From: Scyliorhinus canicula
Taxonomy: Eukaryota
Assembly (NCBI RefSeq): GCF_902713615.1
Contig: NC_052159.1
Location: 4,972,018 to 5,036,017, forward strand
Direction of reading: 5' to 3'
DNA length: 64,000 bases
Below are positions 43,030 through 59,000 of the stretch, piece after piece (the first letter of the stretch is position 1; each line of letters opens with the position of its first letter). A program made the position numbers and the translations under genes. The notes beneath the pieces are model-generated. The model worked only from the letters and a program-made list of their open reading frames with translations, made no database searches and had not been told where the DNA came from.

Positions 43030-45932
43030 ACTGGGATGTACTTTGAAAGTTTATTTACTTTTATTCCAGACAGGTTGAATTCAGCACATTTTTCTCAATA
43101 TTCCAGCCATACCCAATTCACACTTCCATCTGTTAAATGAGTGTTCGGGTGACATTCTCCTTTCCCTCGTCCCACCTATCCACAGTTTCTCCTGCAAACT
43201 AGCTGTTTGGGGAGGGAGGTGTGATTCAGTTCCACAGGCTCTGTACCTCACTTCAGTGGTTGTTTAATGTACAAAGTGAGTGCCAACCACAGTCAATCCC
43301 AAACCCATCTTCACCCCGCACAGTCACCAGATAGGCACCAGGAAACATCCCAATACATGATTGTCCCCTAAGCTGCGAGAACAATTGTCCAAGTCCCATT
43401 GGCCACACCAGCTGCAGCTCCCGGAGGTACTACATCTCCTGAGAAACCCAACAGTCACAATTTTTATTTTCTTTAAAAGGAGGAAGAGACAGGCAATTAT
43501 AAATGACAAGGTGTTTGCAAAAAGGGTTCACCAGGGGTTCTGCACAAGGTCAAATCGGATTTTATTCCCTAGTTTTTAAAAAAAAAAATCACACCATTCC
43601 ATCATGAAATTGATTGAGATACCAGGAGATTTAACTGCATGACCCACTGTATTTCAGACTGGCAATAGCCACACCGTTAAACTGAACACAGGCAGAGAAC
43701 AAAACATGCCCAAAACACTTGATACGGACAGACCTGTGGAGGTCAGTTAAACGACAATCGAGTTCCTCAGTTAGAGGAAACAGATTAAAAGGCTGGAAAT
43801 TAAAAGGAAGGCTGAGAATATGGAGTGTGTCAGGTTCAGGAGAGAGAGAGAAAACAACCTTTAGCAAAAATCTGTCACTTGAATCTGCATACATCTAAAC
43901 TGTTAACCCAATTCTACAACTGCATTCGATCCTGCAGGAAGTGACAAAGTAGAGGCAGAGTTAATTCAAACAGCTTTCAGCCCGTACCTTGGCATGGATT
44001 TTTTAAAAAGACATGGTCACTCCAGCGAAGAGGCTGGAACTTCACACTCCCTCCCCACCCTCACTGCCAGCTGTTTCAGAGAGCTGACAGTATCTGTGAA
44101 ATAGTAACAGTGCAACCAAAATCATACACACAAAACCCAGGGAAAAGCTGTGTCACCAACAGTTTGGATCCCATGTCAACTGCTGAGGAAAATGCTGGAT
44201 TTTCAACCAGTCTGTGGAAATCAAAGGGGAAAATTAAAATCAAAACAATTTGTACTCAGTGATCAGGTGTACATCGTGAAATAGGAAGTGCTGAGTAAAT
44301 AGGATAGGGGACAAAGTATTTAGGTACTGGTACAAATCCCATTCAGTGGCTCGTTATCGGGGGGGGGGGGGGGGGGGGGGGGGGGATGAGATTTGGAAAT
44401 GAGAAACAAGAAACATCAATCAATTTAATTCTCTATTCTTCTTCTCCATGTATTGAGATTTCCTTCCACTCAAATTCTGATAATGGATTGAAATAACTCA
44501 GACAGGGGATAAATACAGTAAATTAAACCAAACCCTTTCCAGAGCAGTGGATAGAGACACAACAAAGTCCAGTTTCTGGATCGCAGAAAAGATCCCCCTC
44601 CAACTAAATGAAAAATGAATGTTAAAATGATAACAGATAGGAAAGGGAACCTCAAATCTCTCGGCTACCAAGCAGATGTGTTGTGGGGGGTTGAACATAC
44701 GCCACTGTATCAGGATATTTTAAAACTCTGAGCCCAAGACAATTTATGGTCATTTTATCAAATTCAGATTCACAGCTAATTAGTGACTAAGTGAGATTAT
44801 GTGATTGAGGAATGTGGTCTTCACACACAGATTTGTATAGAGTGTTCTGCATCCACATCTATGCCAGTTACTGCTACCGGGACTTTAGGGAGGACAAACA
44901 ATTGCAGGTGAGTAACTAATTCCACCTTCAGAGCAATGCTAGCAGTTCAGCTTTCGCGATCCTGCCGAGATGACTTTGCAAAGCTCTGGGATGAGGTTTA
45001 GGTGGCGATAAATTAACAGAACATGTTCATTATGGAAACCGCTGCCCACTAACCAATACCATCTCTGTACAATTCTGCCCCTCCCAAGGTATGTGCAGTG
45101 GCCCCTGGCAGAGGGGGGGGGGGGGGGGGGGGGGGCTCACAAATGTGCAATTCAATTTCCATTACTTACCCCACGTCCAAACCAAAATAAATAGAATAGC
45201 AGGCACCCTGGGCAGTGCTGGGGCAATTTACACTAACTGACAACCATTGCATTCAAACGTGTCCCCAACACACTGTTTCCTTTGAGCAACCGAGGAAGAG
45301 GAGGGGTGGTAATAGCAGACAGGTTAACTTGAGTGCTAAGACTGTGTCAGTACAGCAACAACCCGCAGCAGCTCAACAACCCGATCACGACAACACTCAG
45401 AACCTGCTCACACTCCAGAGACAGACCATTAAAAAATGAAAATTAACGACAAACATAGTCAAGGGTCTCTTTCCAGAAACACAATTAGAAATTAAATAAA
45501 GTAGAAGCTAAACACAGGGAATAAATGGATATCTCATGACAGAAGGATGTGTCTCTGGGAGCAACAAATGTTAATTTTGTCAGGCATAATATTTAATAAA
45601 ATAAATTCCCACTATCGCTCAGGGTAAATAATGTACAGTTAGTTGCTAAATAGGGGAAAACAAATGAAAGTGTTTAAAAGCAGGTGAAGTATGTTTCACA
45701 AAGTCTCCCAGGTCATAAACCACCTAAAGCTTTAACTCAAAAAAAAAAACACATGGCAATCTAGAAAAATCAAATCAGGTAAATATACAGCACAAGAAGC
45801 TTAATTTAAAAAATAGGCGTGATTTACGGGAGCAGACACCCACTGGCATGGAGGTGTCTCTACATCTCTCTGTGGATAGTTAGTCCCAATGTTAAAGTCT
45901 TCGGAGAATGGGTTCCGATGCAGGTGGAGGGG
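43030..45932 (-). other. LAMTOR1: Probable long 3' UTR of LAMTOR1
   Basis: ~2.9 kb with no recognisable TE after the stop codon; two minus-strand AATAAA (plus-strand TTTATT at ~43050 and ~43060); end point inferred. Confidence 0.5.
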
Positions 45933-46025
45933 TCAGGGAATCGCAAACTGCACTACAAGTTCTTCCTTGGCATCCACTTTGATCTGGGAAAGAGCACTTG
46001 ATGCGTAAGCAGCGATTTTAGTGAC
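45933..46025 (-). CDS. LAMTOR1: LAMTOR1 last coding exon ([30 protein letters not shown])
   Basis: Acceptor TTTCTCTTGTCTCAG; matches the Ragulator p18 C-terminus [30 protein letters not shown]. Confidence 0.97.
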
Positions 46026-46606: not shown

Positions 46607-46730
46607 CTGCTGGATGTCTGAAGGGGGCACGGGTTCACTGGCCAATACTTGGTGTGGTTGGCTGGTCAACGTTGGCAGGGAAGTGACCCGCTTGCATTGC
46701 GTCGAACCGCTGATCATTGCTAACCTCGTG
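46607..46730 (-). CDS. LAMTOR1: LAMTOR1 penultimate exon ([42 protein letters not shown])
   Basis: Acceptor TTTTCATCAG, donor CAG|GTATGT; [13 protein letters not shown] motif. Confidence 0.96.
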
Positions 46731-47139
46731 CTGATGAAAAGAACCAAGGCACAACGTTACAACCCATCTCAGCATAGAGCCACCCATAACCTTGTGACCC
46801 ATTCTCCCATCGTGTATGCATTCAATTCCTTTGAGAAAGTTACTATTGAATCTGCTTCAACTGCCTTTAAGGCAGTGTGTTCCAGATCATAACCCGTTAC
46901 ATTCAAAATAAAAGCCCCATTCTTCTGATTATTTAGCCAATTCCAGTCATTAGGCAGGCCACAGTGAAAAATCAGTATTCTGGAGTTTAAATAACTTTTC
47001 TTTAAAAACTCGTGGGATATGGGTTTTACTGATTAGATCAGCATTTATTGCCGATCCCTAATTGCTGTTGAAAAGGTGATGATGAGCTGCCTTCTTGAAC
47101 CGCTGGAGTCCAAGTGGCGATGGAGTAAGTACGATAGGC

Positions 47140-50100
47140 AGAAATGATCTTGGATTGGAAGACGCAGAGGTAAGAGATGCCAAGAGGAAGATGGCACTGG
47201 TGGGAGTAGTCTATAGGCCCTCTAACATTAGTTGCACTGTAGAATAGAGAATAAATCAGGAGATAATAAAGGCATGTAAATAAAGGCATACTGGGTGACT
47301 TTAACCTTTATGTAGATGAGGAAAACCAAATTGGCAGAGGTAGCTATGGGGACGAATTCGGGAGTATACGGAGCAGTTTCCTGCTATTTTGGATTTGGTA
47401 ATGTGCAATGAGGCAGGTTTAATAAAATATCTCAGAGTAAAAGATCCCCGAGGAAGCAGTAACCATAACATGGTAGAGTTTAGCATTCAATTTGAGAGTG
47501 ATAAACTTGGGTCAGAAACAAATGAGCTAAATTTAAATAAGGGTAATTATAGAAATGAGGGCAGAGTTGGCTGGAGTGGACTGGCGAAGGAGTTTAGCAG
47601 GAAAGATGGTTGATCAGCAGTGGCAAACGTTTAAGAAAATAGTTCATGACTCTCAACAAAATATATCCCAGTGAGGTGGCACAAGGGGCGGCACAGTGGT
47701 TAGCAATCTTGCCTCACAGCTCCAGGCTCCCGGGATCAATTCCGTCCTGAGTGGAGTTCGCACTTTCCCACCATGTCTGCGTGGGTTTCCTCCGGATGCT
47801 CCGGTTTCCTCCCACAGTCCAAAGATGTGCAGGTTGGGTGGATTGGCCATGCTAAAATTTCCCCTTAGAGCAGTGTTCTTCAAAGTCAGGGGCGCAACCC
47901 GCGGGTGTTGGGAGGGTCGCGGAGCCGTTGTCCGCGGCGCTCCTGATAACGCAAATCCACGCGCAGCAGCCGGCTTTTCATAACACCGGCTGAAAGCGGC
48001 CGCGAACATGTTAAAAAAAAAATTTGCCGCATGGGCATTCCGCAAACATGTAAAAAAATTTTGGCCGCACTGCGTGTGTGCCCAATTTGCAGTGTGGCCG
48101 CTATTTTTTTTTTTTTGAAACGGTTGCAGCTTTGTTTTACAAGTTCTGTAGTGGTTTTCATTCATTTATTTTATTATTTTTTTTTACAAGTTCGGGGGGG
48201 GGGGGGGTTTATTTGATAAAATTTTACAGGAAAAAAATTTTGAACTTTGGACAGATGGAGACTCCATACTTTCCGACACCGGAAGGCTTCACCTTCATCC
48301 AACAGGTTCCATTGGAGGAGCGTGTACGAGGACCAAAGGGACCTAAAACCATTTCCTCCATTTTTGTCAGCAGCAAACAAGGTAAGAGAAGATGGTGGGT
48401 CGCTCAGGTCGGCCGGCGTGGGCCCCGAAGGTTGGCCGGTTGGTAAAAATGGGTCCCCAGAAAAAAAGTTTGAGGTACACTGCGTTAGAGTCCAATAAAG
48501 GTTAGGTGTGGTTACTGGGTTACCGGGATAGGGTGGAGGTGTGGGCTAAGTAGGTTGCTCTTTCCAAGGGCCGGTGCAGTCTCGATGGGCCAAATGGCCA
48601 CCTTCTGCACAGTAAATTCTATGGTTCTAGGTCGGCAGCATGGTGCCGCAGTGGTTAGCACTGCTGCTTCACAACGACAAGTATCCAGGTTCGATCCCGA
48701 CCCCGGGTCATTGTCCGTGTCGAGTTTGCACATTTTCCCCTTGCCCACGTGGGTCTCACCCCCACAACCCAAAGATGTGCAGGGTAGGTGGATTGGCCAC
48801 GCTAAATTGCCCTTTAATTGGGAAAAAATAATTGGGTACTCTGAATTAATTTTTTAAAAAGATCAGTGACAAACCAGAGGACTGGGAACATTTAAATCAA
48901 CAGAAGATGATCAAAAAATTAAGATAAACTATGAGGATAAACTAGCAATAGAAAAACAGACAGAAAGAGCCTCTTTAAATATATAAAAGAGAGCGAGGAT
49001 AAGTGAACATTAGGCCACTTAGCAAATGAGACTGGGGAAATTATAATGGGGAACCAGAAAATGGCATAGGAGTTAAAAAAATATTTTGTGGCAGCATTCA
49101 CGGTGGAAGACATTTAATAACATCCCAAAAATAAAATAAAGGGGGTGGGGGGAATAAATACAATAATGAAGCTACTGGGGCTAAAGGGACATCCCCTCGA
49201 TCTGATGGATGGAATCCCGGATATTTAAGGAAGTAGCTACAGATATAGTGGGTGCACTGGTAGAAATCTTCCAAGAGTCCTTAAATTCTGGAAAAGCCCC
49301 AGAAGATTAGAAAACTGCCAATGTAGCACCTTTATTCAAAAAAAAGGAGGAGATAAAAAAAAACAGCTAGAGACCAGTTAGCTTCTGTCATTGGGAAAAT
49401 ATAAAGGATGGAATAGCAGGGCATTTAGAGTCAGCATGGCTTAATGAAGGGGAAATCATGTCTGACAAATGTATTATAATTCTGTGGTAACGAGCAGAGT
49501 AGATGAAGGGGAATATAACTGGATTTCCAATAAGGTGCCACACAAAAGGCTGCTCAAGATAAGAGCCCATGGCGTTGGGGGGTAATATATTAGAATGGGT
49601 AGAGGATTGGCTAACTGGTAGAAGACAGAGTTGGGATAGGAGGGGCATTTTCAACATGGCAATCTGTAACTAGTGCCACAGGACCTGTGCTGGGACCACA
49701 ATTATTTACTATTGTTATTTTCTTGGATGAAAGAAGAGAAAGTCCTATTCCCAAGTTCGTGAATAACACAAAAATAGGCGAGAAGGCAAGTGGTAAGGAT
49801 AACAAAGAGTCTACAGAGAAATATAGGTTAGGTGAGTGGGCAAAGATGTGGCAGACGGAATATAATGTAGGGAAATGTGAAGTTGTGCCCTTTGGTAGGA
49901 AGAATAAAGGAGCTGAATATTATTTAAATGGAGACAGACTGCAGAAAACCGCAGCATAGAGGGATCTGGGGTCCTCATGTATAAATCACACAAAGCGAGC
50001 CTGCAGGTTCAGAAGTTAATTGGGAAGGCAAATGGAAGCTGGTCTTTATTTCAAAAGAAATGGAGTTTAAAAATAGGGAAATCTTGCTGAAACTATAAAG

Positions 50101-50388
50101 AGCACCAGTTAGACCATACCTGGAATTTTTAGCTAAGGGAATATATACCGGCATTGGAGGCTGTCCAGAAAAGGTTCACTCGGCTAATCCCAGGTGTGGA
50201 GGGATTTTCTTATGAGGAGAGGTAGAGTTGGTTGGGCCAGTACTCATTGGAGTTTGAAAGAATGAGACATGACCTTATTGAGTCATTTCAGATTCTCAGG
50301 GGACTTGACAGGGTAAATGCAGAGAGAATGTTTCCCTTTGTGGGAGATTCTAGTTCCAGAGGGCATCATCTCAGAGGAAGGGGTCACC
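47140..50388 (+). mobile_element. Old degenerate CR1 LINE (EN-RT) with nested V-SINEs and a hAT MITE; truncated at the 27-bp array
   Basis: DLVMCNE..SNHNMVEF, LGPQLFT, EYNVGKCEV and YSLEFERMRHDLIE remnants. Confidence 0.75.
47871..48482. mobile_element. Non-autonomous hAT (Charlie-like) DNA transposon inserted in a V-SINE
   Basis: TIRs CAGTGTTCTTCAAA / TTTGAGGTACACTG; 8-bp TSD CCTTAGAG (47863-47870) and CGTTAGAG (48483-48490). Confidence 0.85.
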
Positions 50389-53300
50389 TGTACTGCCCCG
50401 CTCGATCCCCTCACCTGTACTGCCCCGCTCGATCCCCTCACCTGTACTGCCGTGCTCGATCCCCTCACCTGTACTGCCGCGCTCGATCCCCTCACCTGTA
50501 CTGCCGCGCTCGATCCCCTCACCTGTACTGCCGCGCTCGATCCCCTCACCTGTACTGCCGCGCTCGATCCCCTCACCTGTACTGCCGCGCTCGATCCCCG
50601 CACCTGTACTGCCGCGCTCGATCCCCGCACCTGTACTGCCGCGCTCGATCCCCTCACCTGTACTGCCGCGCTCGATCCCCTCAGCTGTACTGCCGCGCTC
50701 GATCCCCTCACCTGTACTGCCGCGCTCGATCCCCTCACCTGTACTGCCGCGCTCGATCCCCTCACCTGTACTGCCGCGCTCGATCCCCTCACCTGTACTG
50801 CCGCGCTCGATCCCCTCACCTGTACTGCGGCGCTCGATCCCCTCACCTGTACTGCCGCGCTCGATCCCCGCACCTGTACTGCCGCGCTCGATCCCCTCAC
50901 CTGTACTGCCGCGCTCGATCCCCTCAGCTGTACTGCCGCACACTGACAGTCAGGGACCTATACACGGACGACAGGATCGCAACACTGGACGAACTGACAG
51001 AGAAATTTCAGCTAGCTGGGGGGAACGAGCTACGGTACCTGCAGCTCAAAAACTTCCTACGAAAGGAGACAAGGACGTACCCACAACCGCCACGACAGAC
51101 ACTACTGGAAGACCTACTGGACGCAAGTATCCTAGAGAAAGGGAACTGTAGTGACATGTATGACCGACTGGTAGATAGGGACGACACCGTACTGGACGCA
51201 ACAAGAAGGAAATGGGAGGACGACCTGGGGATGGAGATGGGGTGGGGACTCTGGAGCGAAGCACGGCATAGGGTCAACTCCACCTCCACGTGCGCAAGGC
51301 TCAGCCTGACGCAACTAAAAGTGGGACATAGAGCCCACTTCACGAGAAACCGTATGAGTAGGTTCTTCCCGGAGGTGGAGGACAAATGTGAGCGGTGCCA
51401 GAGAGGCCCGGCCAACCACGCCCACATGTTCTGGTCTTGCCCCAGACTTGTGGAGTACTGGACAGCCTTCTTCGAGGCTATGTCCAAAGTGGTGGGGGTG
51501 AGGGTGGAGCCATGCCCGATAGTGGCGGTCTTCGGCGTTTCAGACCAGCCAGATCTATTCCTGGGGAGGAGGGCGGACGCCCTTACCTTTGCCTCCCTGA
51601 TTGCCCGCCGTAGAATCCTGTTTGGCTGGCGGTCAGCAGCACCACCCAGAGCTGCAGACTGGCTGTCCGACCTCTCGGAATCTCTCCAAATGGAGAAAAT
51701 CAAATTCGCCATCCGAGGGTCGGACGACGGCTTCCACAGAACGTGGGAGCCATTCATGCAACTGTTCCGGGACCTGTTTGTGGCCAACGTACATGAGGAA
51801 GAATAGTCGGGTGGCCAAGAACCAGGGGAAAATGGACGGGAATCGGGGGAAGGTAGCCGGGGTGGGGGGGGGGGGGGGGTTACGGGCTTGGTATGGGGGT
51901 TTGATGGCAAGCCAAGGCCCAAAACCAAACTGTAAATAAATGCCTATAAACATGTGCCTCGGCCATATTGGGGAATGTAAAATATGTATGCTGGCTAAAG
52001 GGGGCGGCCACAATTATTGTTATGAAGATGCTTACCTGTAAATATTCATGTTAAATTTTTGTGTTTTCCTTTTTTTTTTCTCTCTCTCTAATAACTTGTA
52101 ATTTGTCATATATAAAATATGAAAACTCAATAAAAAAACATTTATAAAAAAAAGCTGTACTGCCGCGCTCGATCCCCTCAGCTGTACTGCCGCGCTCGAT
52201 CCCCTCACCTGTACTGCCGAGCTCGATCCCCTCAGCTGTACTGCCCCGCTCGATCCCCTCACCTGTACTGCCGCGCTCGATCCCCTCACCTGTACTGCGG
52301 CGCTCGATCCCCTCACCTGTACTGCGGCGCTCGATCCCCTCACCTGTACTGCCGCGCTCGATCCCCTCACCTGTACTGCCCCGCTCGATCCCCTCACCTG
52401 TACTGCCGAGCTCGATCCCCTCAGCTGTATTCCGCGCTCGATCCCCTCACCTGTACTGCCGCGCTCGATCCCCTCACCTGTACTGCCGCGCTCGATCCCC
52501 TCACCTGTACTGCCGCGCTCGATCCCCTCAGCTGCACTGCCGCGCTCGATCCCCTCACCTGTACTGCCCCGCTCGATCCCCTCACCTGTACTGCCGAGCT
52601 CGATCCCCTCACCTGTACTGCCGCGCTCGATCCCCTCACCTGTACTGCCCCGCTCGATCCCCTCACCTGTACTGCCGCGCTCGATCCCCTCACCTGTACT
52701 GCCGAGCTCGATCCCCTCAGCTGTATTCCGCGCTCGATCCCCTCACCTGTACTGCCCCGCTCGATCCCCTCACCTGTACTGCCCCGCTCGATCCCCTCAC
52801 CTGTACTGCCGCGCTCGATCCCCTCACCTGTACTGCCACGCTCGATCCCCTCACCTGTACTGCCCCGCTCGATCCCCTCAGCTGTACTGCCGCGCTCGAT
52901 CCCCTCACCTGTACTGCCGAGCTCGATCCCCTCAGCTGTACTGCCCCGCTCGATCCCCTCACCTGTACTGCCGCGCTCGATCCCCTCACCTGTACTGCGG
53001 CGCTCGATCCCCTCACCTGTACTGCGGCGCTCGATCCCCTCACCTGTACTGCCGCGCTCGATCCCCTCACCTGTACTGCCGCGCTCGATCCCCTCACCTG
53101 TACTGCCCCGCTCGATCCCCTCACCTGTACTGCCGCGCTCGATCCCCTCACCTGTACTGCCGCGCTCGATCCCCTCACCTGTACTGCCGCGCTCGATCCC
53201 CGCACCTGTACTGCCCCGCTCGATCCCCTCACCTGTACTGCCCCGCTCGATCCCCTCACCTGTACTGCCCCGCTCGATCCCCTCACCTGTACTGCCGCGC

Positions 53301-55294
53301 TCGATCCCCTCAGCTGCACTGCCGCGCTCGATCCCCTCACCTGTACTGCCCCGCTCGATCCCCTCACCTGTACTGCCGAGCTCGATCCCCTCACCTGTAC
53401 TGCCGCGCTCGATCCCCTCACCTGTACTGCCGCGCTCGATCCCCTCACCTGTACTGCCCCGCTCGATCCCCTCACCTGTACTGCCGCGCTCGATCCCCTC
53501 ACCTGTACTGCCGCGCTCGATCCCCTCACCTGTACTGCCCCGCTCGATCCCCTCACCTGTACTGCCGCGCTCGATCCCCTCACCTGTACTGCCGAGCTCG
53601 ATCCCCTCAGCTGTATTCCGCGCTCGATCCCCTCACCTGTACTGCCCCGCTCGATCCCCTCACCTGTACTGCCCCGCTCGATCCCCTCACCTGTACTGCC
53701 GCGCTCGATCCCCTCACCTGTACTGCCACGCTCGATCCCCTCACCTGTACTGCCCCGCTCGATCCCCTCACCTGTACTGCAGCGCTCGATCCCCTCACCT
53801 GTACTGCCGCGCTCGATCCCCTCACCTGTACTGCCGCGCTCGATCCCCTCACCTGTACTGCCGCGCTCGATCCCCTCACCTGTACTGCCGCGCTCGATCC
53901 CCTCACCTGTACTGCCGCGCTCGATCCCCTCACCTGTACTGCCCCGCTCGATCCCCTCACCTGTACTGCCCGCTCGATCCCCTCACCTGTACTGCCGCGC
54001 TCGATCCCCTCACCTGTACTGCCGCGCTCGATCCCCTCACCTGTACTGCCCTGCTCGATCCCCTCACCTGTACTGCCGCGCTCAATCCCCTCACCTGTAC
54101 TGCCCCGCTCGATCCCCTCACCTGTACTGCCCCGCTCGATCCCCTCACCTGTACTGCCCGCTCGATCCCCTCACCTGTACTGCCCGCTCGATCCCCTCAC
54201 CTGTACTGCCGCGCTCGATCCCCTCACCTGTACTGCCCCGCTCGATCCCCTCACCTGTACTGCCCCGCTCGATCCCCTCACCTGTACTGCCGCGCTCGAT
54301 CCCCTCACCTGTACTGCCGCGCTCGATCCCCTCACCTGTACTGCCCCGCTCGATCCCCTCACCTGTACTGCAGCGCTCGATCCCTCACCTGTACTGCCGC
54401 GCTCGATCCCCTCACCTGTACTGCCGCGCTCGATCCCCTCACCTGTACTGCCGCGCTCGATCCCCTCACCTGTACTGCCGCGCTCGATCCCCTCACCTGT
54501 ACTGCCCGCTCGATCCCCTCACCTGTACTGCCCCGCTCGATCCCCTCACCTGTACTGCCGCGCTCGATCCCCTCACCTGTACTGCCCTGCTCGATACCCT
54601 CACCTGTACTGCCCGCTCGATCCCCTCACCTGTACTGCCCCGCTCGATCCCCTCACCTGTACTGCCCCGCTCGATCCCCTCACCTGTACTGCCCCGCTCG
54701 ATCCCCTCACCTGTACTGCCGCGCTCGATCCCCTCACCTGTACTGCCCTGCTCGATCCCCTCACCTGTACTGCCGCGCTCAATCCCCTCACCTGTACTGC
54801 CCCGCTCGATCCCCTCACCTGTACTGCCCCGCTCGATCCCCTCACCTGTACTGCCCGCTCGATCCCCTCACCTGTACTGCCCGCTCGATCCCCTCACCTG
54901 TACTGCCCCGCTCGATCCCCTCACCTGTACTGCAGCGCTCTATCCCCTCACCTGTACTGCCGCGCTCGATCCCCTCACCTGTACTGCCGCGCTCGATCCC
55001 CTCACCTGTACTGCCGCGCTCGATCCCCTCACCTGTACTGCCGCGCTCGATCCCCTCACCTGTACTGCCGCGCTCGATCCCCTCACCTGTACTGCCGCGC
55101 TCGATCCCATCACCTGTACTGCCGCGCTCGATCCCATCACCTGTACTGCCGCGCTCGATCCCCTCACCTGTACTGCCCGCTCGATCCCCTCACTTGTACT
55201 GCTGCGTGCGATCTCCTCACCTGTACTGCCGCACTCGATCCCCTCACCTGTACTGCCGCGCTCGATCCCCTCACCTGTACTGCCGCGCTCGATC
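50384..55294 (-). repeat. 27-bp minisatellite (~135 units) derived from the LAMTOR1 exon 3 / intron 3 junction
   Basis: Minus-strand unit GATCGAGCGCGGCAGTACAGGTGAGGG; blocks 50384-50939 (~20 units) and 52153-55294 (~116 units); the terminal unit overlaps the exon. Confidence 0.97.
50940..52152 (+). mobile_element. 5'-truncated L1/Tx1-clade LINE inserted in the 27-bp array
   Basis: Open frame ending CERC..PANHAHMFWSCP...WEPF; 3' UTR, AATAAA and poly-A; 14-bp TSD AGCTGTACTGCCGC (50926-50939 and 52153-52166). Confidence 0.9.
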
Positions 55295-55352
55295 CATGTA
55301 CTCGTGCTGCTCCATGCTCTGTGAATCTGCGGCTGACACATCGATGATGTTA
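55275..55352 (-). CDS. LAMTOR1: LAMTOR1 exon 3 ([26 protein letters not shown]); upstream exons not found in the window
   Basis: 78-nt exon, acceptor CCTTCCATCCCCAG, donor CAG|GTGAGG; matches p18 [26 protein letters not shown]; phase 2 joins the exon at 46730. Confidence 0.97.
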
Positions 55353-56094: not shown

Positions 56095-59000
56095 ACAAAG
56101 AACAAAGAAAAGTACAGCACAGGAACAGGCCCTTCGGCCCTCCAAGCCCGTGCCGACCATGCAGCCTGTCTTCACAGCGCCAGGGTCCCAGGTTCGATTC
56201 CCCGCTGGGTCACTGTCTGTGTGGAGTTTGCATGTTCTCCCCGTGTCTGCGTGGGTTTCCTCCGGGTGCTCCGGTTTCCTCCCACAGTCCAAAGACGTGC
56301 AGGTTAGGTGGATTGGCTATGCTAAATTGCCCTTAGTGATCAAAAAGGTTAGGAGGGGTTATTGGATTATGGGGATAGGGTGGATGTAAAGGGACTAAGT
56401 GGGTCGGTGCTGACTCGATGGGCCGAATGGCCTCCTTCTGCACTATATGCTCTATGTTCTAAACTAAAATCTTCTACACTTCATGGGTCCGTATCCCTCT
56501 ATTCCCAACATTATTCTTGTATTTGTCAAGATGCCCCTTAAATGTCACTATCGTCCCTGCTTCCAGCACCTCCTCCGGCAGCGAGTTCCAGGCACCCACT
56601 ACCCTCTGTGTAAAAAAATACTCGCCTCGTAAATCTCCTCTAAACCTTGCCCCTCGCACCTTAAACCTATGCCTCCAAGTAATTGACCCCTCTACACTGG
56701 GGAAAAGTCTCCGACTGTCCACTCTGTCTATGCCCCTCATAATTTTGTAGTCCTCTATCAGGTCACCCCTCAACCTCCGTCATTACAGTGAGAACAAACC
56801 GAGTTTATTCAACCGTTCCTCATAGCTAATGCCCTCCATACCAGGCAACATCCTGGTACATTTCTTCTGCACCCTCTCTAAAGCCTCCACATCCTTCTGG
56901 TAGTGTGGCGACCAGAATTAAACACTATACTCCAAACGTGGCCTAACTAAGGTTCTACACAGCTGCAACACGACTTGCCAATTCTTATACTCAATGCCCC
57001 GGCCAATGAAGGCAAGCATGCCGTATGCCTTCTTGACTACCTTCTCCACCTGTGTTGCCCCTTTCAGTGACCTGTGGACCTGTACACCTAGATCGCTCTG
57101 ACTTTCAATACTCTTCATATTTTTTTTTAATAAACAATTTTATTGAGGTAGTTTTTGGCTTTATAAACAGTTACAGACATCATCAGAAAGGAAGCAAAAA
57201 AGGCAAAAATGTGCAAACGTCCACGTACTTTCAATACTTCCATCGTACCGTATTGCACAAGCCCGCTCCCCTCCCACCCGTACTACCCGCCATATTTTCC
57301 CTCCTACTCTACTCTACCCTACCCCCCCCACCCCCCTGCTGACGCTCACTCTCCCGCAAAGAAGTCAATAAATGGTTGCCACCTCGGGGTGAACCCCAGT
57401 ACAGATCCCCTCAAGGCGAACTTAATTTTTTCCATCCCCAGGAAACTTGACATGTCCGCAAGCCACCACTCAGTCTTCGGGGGCTTTGAGTCCCTCCACG
57501 CCAATAATATTCGTCGCCGGGCTATCAGGGAAGCAAAGGCCAGCACATCGGCCGCTTTCTCCCCCTGGACGCCCGGGTCTTCCGAAACCCCAAAAATTGC
57601 CACCCCTGGACTCATCACCACCCTTGTTTTTAGCACCTGGGACATGACCCCCGCAAATCCCTCCCAGTACCCCCTCAGCTCAGGGCATGCCCAAAACATG
57701 TGCACATGGTTCGCTGGTCCTCCCGCGCACCTAGCGCATTTGTCCTCTATCCCGAAAAATTTGCTCATCCGAGCCACCGTCATATGGGCCCGGTGAACGA
57801 CCTTAAATTGGATCAGCCCGAGCCTAGCACATGTCGCGGTCGAGTTTACCCTACTCAGGGCCTCTGCCCACAGCCCATCCTCCATTTCCCCGCCCAGCTC
57901 CTCCTCGACTTTCAATACTCTTGATGGTTCTACCATTCACTGTATATTCCCTACCTGCATTAGACCTTCCAAAATGCATTACCTTACATTTGTCCGGATT
58001 AAACTCCATCTGCCATCTCTCCGCCCAAGTCTCCAACTGATCTAAATCCTGCTGTATCCTCTGACAGTCCTCATCGCTATCCGCAATTCCACCAACCTTT
58101 GTGTCATCTGCAAACTTACTAATCAGACCAGTTTCATTTTCCTCCAAATCATTTATATATACCACAAACAGCAAATGTCCCAGCACTGATCCCTGTGGAA
58201 TACCACTAGTCACAGCCCTCCAATTAGAAAAGCACCCTTCCATTGTTACTCTCTGCCTTCTGTGACCTAGCCAGTTCTGTATCCACCTTGCCAGCTCACC
58301 CCAGATCCCGTGCAACTTCATCTTTTGTACGTCTGCCATGAGGGACCTTGTCAAAGGCCTTATTGAAGTCCATATAGACAACATCCACTGCCTTACCTGC
58401 ATCAGTCATCTTTGTGGCCTCCTCGAAAATCTTGATCAAGTTAGTGAGACACGACCTCCCCTTCACAAAACCATGCTGCCTCTCACTAATACGTCCATTT
58501 GCTTCCAAATGGGAGTAGATCCTGTCTCGAAGAATTCTCTCCAGTAATTACCCTACCACTGACGTAAGGCTCACCGGTCTGTAGTTCCCTGGATTATCCT
58601 TGCTACCCTTCTTAAACAAAGCAATAACATTGGCTATTCTCCAGTCCTCCGGGACATCACCTGAAGACAGTGAGGATCCAAAGATTTCTGTCACGGCCTC
58701 AGCAATTTCCTCTCTTGCCTCTTTCAGTATTCTGGGGTAGATCCCATCAGGCCCTGGAGATTTATCTACCTTAATATTTTTCAAGACGCCCAACATCTCG
58801 TCTTTTTGGATCTCAATGTGACCCAGGCTATCTACACACCCTTCTCCAGACTCAACAACCACCAATTCCTCCTCTTTGGTGAATACTGATGCAAAGTATT
58901 CATTTAGTACCTCGCCCATTTCCTCAGGCTCCTCACATAGATTCCCTTGCCTATCCTTTAGTGGGCCAACCCATTCCCTGGCTACCCTCTTGCTTTTTAT

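Follow-up and report, generated by a model that had tools for sequence, protein, structure and literature searches.

A 136-unit minisatellite repeats the exon 3 splice donor of LAMTOR1 in the catshark Scyliorhinus canicula

The LAMTOR1 gene of the catshark Scyliorhinus canicula carries, at the start of intron 3, a minisatellite made of 136 complete copies of the end of exon 3 together with its 5' splice site. The gene lies on the minus strand of the window, the whole stretch of 64,000 nucleotides that was analysed (assembly GCF_902713615.1, contig NC_052159.1, positions 4,972,018 to 5,036,017). A lineage-specific boundary minisatellite, likely neutral or mildly costly, in which the authentic donor wins by its position, is probably the correct description, and we give it a probability of about 0.65. 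The prediction of donor use follows from the anatomy of the array and from the precedent of similar minisatellites in F7, IFI6, CBS, LMNB2 and PDGFA.

Structure of the donor array

The 25-residue translation of 55351-55277 (minus strand) matches human LAMTOR1 chains of the Ragulator complex (E ~1e-10). Splicing 55352-55275 to 46730-46607 and 46025-45933 gives residues 66-162 of P0125, the NCBI LAMTOR1 protein of S. canicula and S. torazame, with 100% identity. When P0125 was mapped on the fetched loci, five coding exons were obtained; the exon bearing the array is exon 3 and the intron is intron 3. The window holds the three 3' exons of LAMTOR1 (Table 1), and exons 1 and 2 lie beyond it. The first-pass annotation of this DNA, made from the letters alone, had placed the end of exon 3 at 55275 and the following acceptor at 46730, and both positions are right. 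The annotated protein of both catsharks corresponds to the 55275 to 46730 junction, an agreement which says little about donor use. Upstream of the exon 3 acceptor there is a branch-like CTCACTAAC and a good pyrimidine tract, and the authentic donor agrees with the MAG/GURAGU consensus in 8 of 9 positions (in all motifs a slash marks the exon-intron boundary).

On the minus strand exon 3 ends in ...GATCGAGCGCGGCAGTACAG/GTGAGGG (also given as ...ATGGATCGAGCGCGGCAGTACAG/GTGAGGG). The repeat unit consists of the last 20 nt of the exon (21 if a shared G is counted) and the first seven intronic nucleotides, GTGAGGG, just as the first-pass annotation had described it. The last 21 nt of exon 3 (55295-55275), which encode the conserved DRARQY, are the founding copy. 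Tandem Repeats Finder (TRF) reported a 27-bp period at 52155-55295 (116.8 copies, 95% match) and at 50384-50939 (20.6 copies, 97%). A search with the consensus unit, allowing up to 3 mismatches, found 123 matches against 0 expected from shuffles, all of them on the minus strand and within 50408-55294. The array is real, and the earlier estimate of about 135 tandem copies needed only a small correction: parsed unit by unit, it has 136 complete units beyond the exon's own copy. It is not continuous, being split by an insert of 1,215 bp that the first-pass annotation had overlooked. Of the units, 124 measure 27 nt and 12 measure 26 nt, the latter with a difference of one G or C within a short run; together they fall into 22 sequence types. 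Multi-unit blocks recur in the array as higher-order repeats; for example, a 9-unit block occurs twice in the proximal part, 33 units apart.

The nine-base donor CAG/GTGAGG occurs 118 times, once at the authentic site and 117 times in the 136 downstream units. The remaining units carry CAG/CTGAGG (10), CAG/GTGCGG (4), CAG/GTGATG (2), CAA/GTGAGG (1) and a terminal degenerate CAG/GTGACC. It had been claimed that most units keep a strong donor and that a minority are inactivated, and the counts bear this out. The perfect decoys are identical to the authentic donor over the 9-mer and the 21 nt upstream of the junction; they differ from it in position and in having the G-rich repeat, instead of exon, further upstream. 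Beyond 21 nt upstream of the junction, ...TACATGGATCG marks the authentic donor and ...GTGAGGGGATCG marks a decoy.

The insert that splits the array has a copy of a 13-bp target-site duplication, GCTGTACTGCCGC, on either side (50927-50939 and 52155-52167), and the phase of the repeat is broken there. Its A-rich tail is at 52154, and on the plus strand it encodes a region with C-terminal cysteine/histidine motifs and a weak zf-RVT match (E 7e-4, below the Pfam cut-off). The insert is absent from the S. torazame locus. We read it as an L1-like, 5'-truncated retroelement which landed in a pre-existing array. On the minus strand of 52030-52160 the antisense A-tail appears in the LAMTOR1 transcript as a long T-rich tract, with several AGs after it. 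Some 60-90 nt beyond these there is a strong donor-like CAG/GTAAGC near 52037, which could make a cryptic exon between the array blocks.

Distribution of the array among sharks

The LAMTOR1 loci of ten other elasmobranch assemblies, including that of S. torazame, were compared with S. canicula, giving 11 loci in all. In the nine loci from outside Scyliorhinus (Hemiscyllium, three further orectolobiforms, a second Chiloscyllium, two lamniforms, Heterodontus and Mustelus) a single ...CA(G/A)TACAG/GTGAGG is followed by unrelated intron. S. torazame (locus L009) has the array at the same place and in the same 27-bp register, with 10 units after the exon copy. All ten have perfect donors and the same in-frame TGA as in S. 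canicula. The presence of the array in S. torazame and of a single copy in the nine other elasmobranchs points, among the available genomes, to a genus-restricted, fast-evolving minisatellite.

The two congeners differ about 13-fold in copy number (136 vs 10), while their flanking introns are 88-92% identical. Intron 3 measures 1.2 kb in Mustelus, as against 4.3 kb in S. torazame and 8.5 kb in S. canicula. Nine of the ten S. torazame units contain GGCGG, and the exon copy and every S. canicula unit contain GGCAG, so that the units of each species are evolving in concert. Comparison of the two loci describes an array that would have been born before the canicula/torazame split and would have expanded recently and rapidly in S. 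canicula. It probably originated in the Scyliorhinus lineage by tandem duplication of the 27-bp segment (20-21 exonic nt + GTGAGGG). Unequal exchange, of single units and of multi-unit blocks alike, would since have enlarged and homogenised it.

It is very unlikely that the array is real but that its length, or some of its variants such as the twelve 26-nt units, are artefacts of assembly or polishing. The long form is found in one assembly only, and a difference of one G or C in a short run, as in the 26-nt units, is a typical long-read error. On the other hand, an independent assembly of a congener carries the same array at the same place, and ordered higher-order blocks and a clean 13-bp target-site duplication are unlike the errors of collapse and expansion.

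Several further observations were made at these loci. Unit 1 of S. torazame (L009:22585-22611) and unit 2 of S. canicula (55247-55221) share a C>T change at the same CpG (GAGTG), and these may be orthologous old edge units or a recurrent CpG transition. In S. torazame there are about 420 bp between the end of the array and the first alignable base, and these are missing in S. canicula. Intron 3 outside the array (46731-50383) consists largely of interspersed repeats with many copies elsewhere in S. torazame and in other shark loci. The segments 47004-47138 (intron 3) and 56098-56761 (intron 2) can be aligned with Mustelus asterias by tblastx and may be conserved non-coding elements or old shared repeats. 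In M. asterias a gene model on the opposite strand (L010:22134-28307, 265 aa, faint leucine-rich repeat matches) overlaps LAMTOR1 in its 3' half, exons 3-5 included; under the catshark array no counterpart of this coding block was seen. No antisense coding exon was found under the array, as the blocks conserved with Mustelus are the LAMTOR1 exons, the untranslated region and a few intronic blocks outside the array.

The in-frame stop codon

Reading through the authentic donor gives TAC AGG TGA, so that the protein would end in ...DRARQYR, as had been stated in the first-pass annotation. By the reading frame, an open frame is given only by the first of the 118 identical donors, and the earlier statement that one of more than a hundred donors can be productive is thus supported at the level of sequence. 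In a decoy-spliced mRNA at least 147 nt would separate the TGA from the exon 4/5 junction downstream of it. Such transcripts would be eligible for nonsense-mediated decay (NMD) under the 50-55 nt rule because of this distance, and the premature termination codon, already proposed as an NMD substrate, qualifies as one by its position. Use of a decoy would drop residues 89-162, the C-terminal loss that had been predicted.

The same annotation had described the stop codon as built into the array, and this part has to be given up. AG/GTGAGG, and hence AGG TGA, stands at the exon 3 junction in all 11 shark loci. The in-frame stop is ancestral and was not acquired with the array; it is not a design feature, and a stop codon evolved as a safety device is ruled out by the same observation.

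Choice among identical donors

We propose that productive splicing would join the most upstream donor (55275) to the acceptor at 46730 almost exclusively. This donor would be favoured by its pairing across the short 78-nt exon with a strong acceptor, and by being transcribed first. The 117 identical donors downstream are presumably functional in principle and would lose by position, through an upstream preference or 'oriented scanning' as in F7 IVS7 (intervening sequence 7). If there is any leak, it would most likely come from the two nearest perfect decoys, at 55248 (+27 nt) and 55221 (+54 nt), and the leaked transcripts, carrying the TGA, should be cleared by NMD. The array would then most likely be neutral or slightly deleterious baggage and not a regulatory device.

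The variants within the S. canicula array gave no signal of selection on the donor positions inside the units, neither of protection nor of purging: the nine donor positions hold 4 distinct variant types, and the remaining 18 positions hold 13. Variants cluster at the CpG-rich positions 16-18 and at +1. Three of the six decoys closest to the exon (55114-55248) are weakened (CAA/GTGAGG at 55194, GTGATG at 55141 and 55114) compared with about 13% overall, a post hoc comparison with p ~0.03. The difference may stem from selection against those decoys that would compete best, or from the usual divergence of edges; it was given no weight because array edges are generally more diverged.

Two other ways of silencing or using the decoys were rejected. 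RNA structure does not hide them, since exon 3 with nine units folds less stably than shuffles do (z = +2.3). Recursive or multi-step splicing through the array is disfavoured because the unit has no polypyrimidine tract for an acceptor role: CAG/G is present, but pyrimidines make up only 8 of 27 nt (30%) and form no run longer than 2. Multi-step splicing had been one of the mechanisms considered in the first reading of the sequence, along with enforcement of the first site, a copy-number-tunable rheostat and a U1 sink; of these, only enforcement of the first site is backed by precedent (F7, IFI6, CBS), and the regulatory roles are unsupported.

A second explanation is that splicing is unproductive to a degree tuned by copy number. 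A measurable share of decoy use would lead to the TGA and to NMD, and the length of the array would set the output of LAMTOR1, the scaffold of Ragulator and mTORC1 signalling. The 117 decoys that share the authentic 9-mer, the position of the TGA relative to the last exon junction and the failure of RNA structure to hide the decoys all speak for it. The pseudo-sites nearest the authentic donor are also constitutively used in IFI6 and CBS (PMC1557585). Against this, identical pseudo-sites in F7 show no leak (PMC1557585), the stop predates the array, and the donor positions within the units have no excess of conservation. Restriction of the array to a single genus and a roughly 13-fold difference in copy number between congeners fit a drifting minisatellite better than a tuned device. 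Conservation of the kind seen in poison exons is also lacking, the array being absent from the nine non-Scyliorhinus loci. Tuning by copy number is therefore considered unlikely.

There are several points against a neutral array with exclusive use of the first donor. The precedents have 4-25 pseudo-sites, mostly weaker, whereas here there are 117 strong decoys with 8 of 9 consensus positions, so that even a tiny usage per site could add up. Reed and Maniatis in 1986 and Eperon et al. in 1993 reportedly found that, when U1 occupies two strong sites at once, splicing goes to the one closer to the acceptor. Such a rule of competition in cis would favour the distal units. Persistence of the array since before the canicula/torazame split is compatible both with function and with neutrality. 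The copy number comes from one assembly; the fetched locus L008 is identical to the window over 19 kb and gives no independent check of array length. Finally, searches of a protein collection with the exon 3-5 product and with residues 1-88 found no transcript-derived catshark LAMTOR1 fragments, a result that is uninformative on truncation.

Composition of the array and U1 binding

On its sense strand the array has a G+C content of 66%, and its G skew over 3.7 kb is +0.46 to +0.5. Each unit has one GGGG run, which begins at +5 of every donor, and three CpGs; across the array there are about 400 CpGs and few CpG-decay variants. Such a composition resembles a CpG island and is prone to R-loops or G-quadruplexes, here inside a gene body. 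Effects of the array on elongation, on R-loops or on the binding of hnRNP H/F are conceivable.

This composition bears on a further explanation, in which the array would be a platform that binds many U1 small nuclear ribonucleoproteins (snRNPs) without being spliced. Bound U1 could aid the upstream donor, keep the transcript from being cleaved and polyadenylated prematurely within an intron that is enlarged and bears a retroelement, or boost transcription; alternatively the array could be a local sink for U1. About 117 consensus-like U1 sites are packed into 3.7 kb, each with its GGGG run. Intronic G-runs are described as splicing enhancers (bioRxiv 10.1101/2024.10.07.617118; PMC1326234), and an intronic variable number tandem repeat (VNTR) of ABCA7 has length-dependent effects on splicing (PMC5954066). 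S. torazame nevertheless copes with 10 units, and the nine other elasmobranch assemblies with none, and the case for a platform is purely inferential. U1 is very abundant in the nucleus, and the intron of one gene cannot plausibly titrate it, which counts against a sink. We regard a U1 platform as very unlikely.

A broader possibility is that the array is not inert. Its influence on LAMTOR1 output would come from low-level decoy use with NMD, or from massed binding of U1 and G-run proteins with R-loop-prone transcription, and the roughly 13-fold expansion would amount to a species-specific change in the dosage of the Ragulator scaffold. This is highly doubtful.

Coordinates of the features discussed are collected in Table 1. 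Downstream of the LAMTOR1 3' end, TRF also reported an uninterrupted stretch of 27 G (plus strand, 44359-44385).

Table 1. Features of the LAMTOR1 3' region and of the donor array (window coordinates)
Feature	Position	Strand	Details
LAMTOR1 exon 3	55275..55352	-	78 nt, residues 66-90; acceptor AG 55354-55353
Authentic 5' splice site CAG/GTGAGG	55269..55277	-	last exon base 55275, first intron base 55274
In-frame TGA	55271..55273	-	reached if donor 1 is skipped; repeated in each unit
Proximal array block	52155..55274	-	116 units, final unit broken by the retroelement
5'-truncated non-LTR (non-long terminal repeat; L1-like) retroelement, 3' end	50940..52154	+	1,215 bp, antisense to LAMTOR1
Distal array block	50384..50939	-	20 units; last donor-like site CAG/GTGACC at 50388/50387, degenerate
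LAMTOR1 exon 4	46607..46730	-	124 nt; AG 46732-46731; sole acceptor open to all donors
LAMTOR1 exon 5, coding part	45933..46025	-	stop codon 45935-45933

Comparison with known boundary minisatellites

How a choice is made among identical 5' splice sites is still argued, with upstream scanning or exon definition on one side and proximity to the acceptor on the other. The catshark locus sets 117 strong, identical and unproductive decoys in an essential, broadly expressed gene beside the 4 to 25 pseudo-sites of the documented natural models, and S. torazame with its 10 units is a natural control. Junction offsets come in 27-nt steps, and the locus therefore offers an extreme, easily scored test of 5' splice-site choice. 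Two questions could be answered with it: whether position by itself keeps splicing faithful, and whether a donor array of such length is costly or has a regulatory effect. If the first donor is used exclusively, the F7 result would be extended by more than an order of magnitude; if not, this would be a rare case of minisatellite length tuning a component of the mTORC1 pathway.

The catshark array has the anatomy of a known class, being an intronic head-to-tail array of units in the 10-100-bp range whose first monomer spans the junction and so reiterates the donor. The first-pass annotation had named only CBS as a precedent; CBS is indeed one, but novelty was overstated, as F7, IFI6 (25 pseudo-sites), LMNB2 and PDGFA are also documented.

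The closest parallel is IVS7 of human F7, where the exon 7 boundary falls within the first of the 37-bp monomers (Borensztajn et al. 2006, PMC1557585). All its pseudo-sites are functional and only the most upstream intact one is used; destroying that site shifts splicing to the next, and pseudo-sites strengthened to a consensus value of 91 still fail to compete (PMC1557585). The two arrays share a boundary-spanning first monomer, pseudo-donors identical in sequence, an essential gene and pseudo-sites whose use would mostly be unproductive. In F7 the 37-bp unit contains 4 exonic nt and is present 5-9 times, the donor is weak (UGG/gugggu), and donor usage was measured. In the catshark a 27-bp unit with 20 exonic nt is present 136 times; its donor is strong, and each copy contains a stop.

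Intron 2 of IFI6 (6-16) is similar in that many repeats of a donor-containing unit follow the authentic site. The IFI6 unit is 12 nt long and in frame, giving protein isoforms, unlike the catshark array, where every decoy gives a premature stop. Its 25 pseudo-sites, of which the two nearest are used together with the authentic donor, make it the largest case in the list of PMC1557585 (source Turri, Cuin and Porter 1995), and the catshark array is about five times larger.

The 31-bp VNTR in IVS13 of CBS likewise spans the boundary of exon 13 and intron 13. It is smaller, and it is polymorphic in humans with association data; PMC1557585 gives 15-20 repeats, and as in IFI6 the authentic donor is used along with its two closest pseudo-sites. 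LMNB2 (100-bp unit, 10-15 repeats) and PDGFA (PDGF intron 4, 81-bp unit, 16-18 repeats) are also boundary-spanning, with longer units and far fewer copies than in the catshark, and in both only the authentic donor is listed there as used. The catshark array is a new and much the largest member of a kind described since the 1990s, and not a new mechanism.

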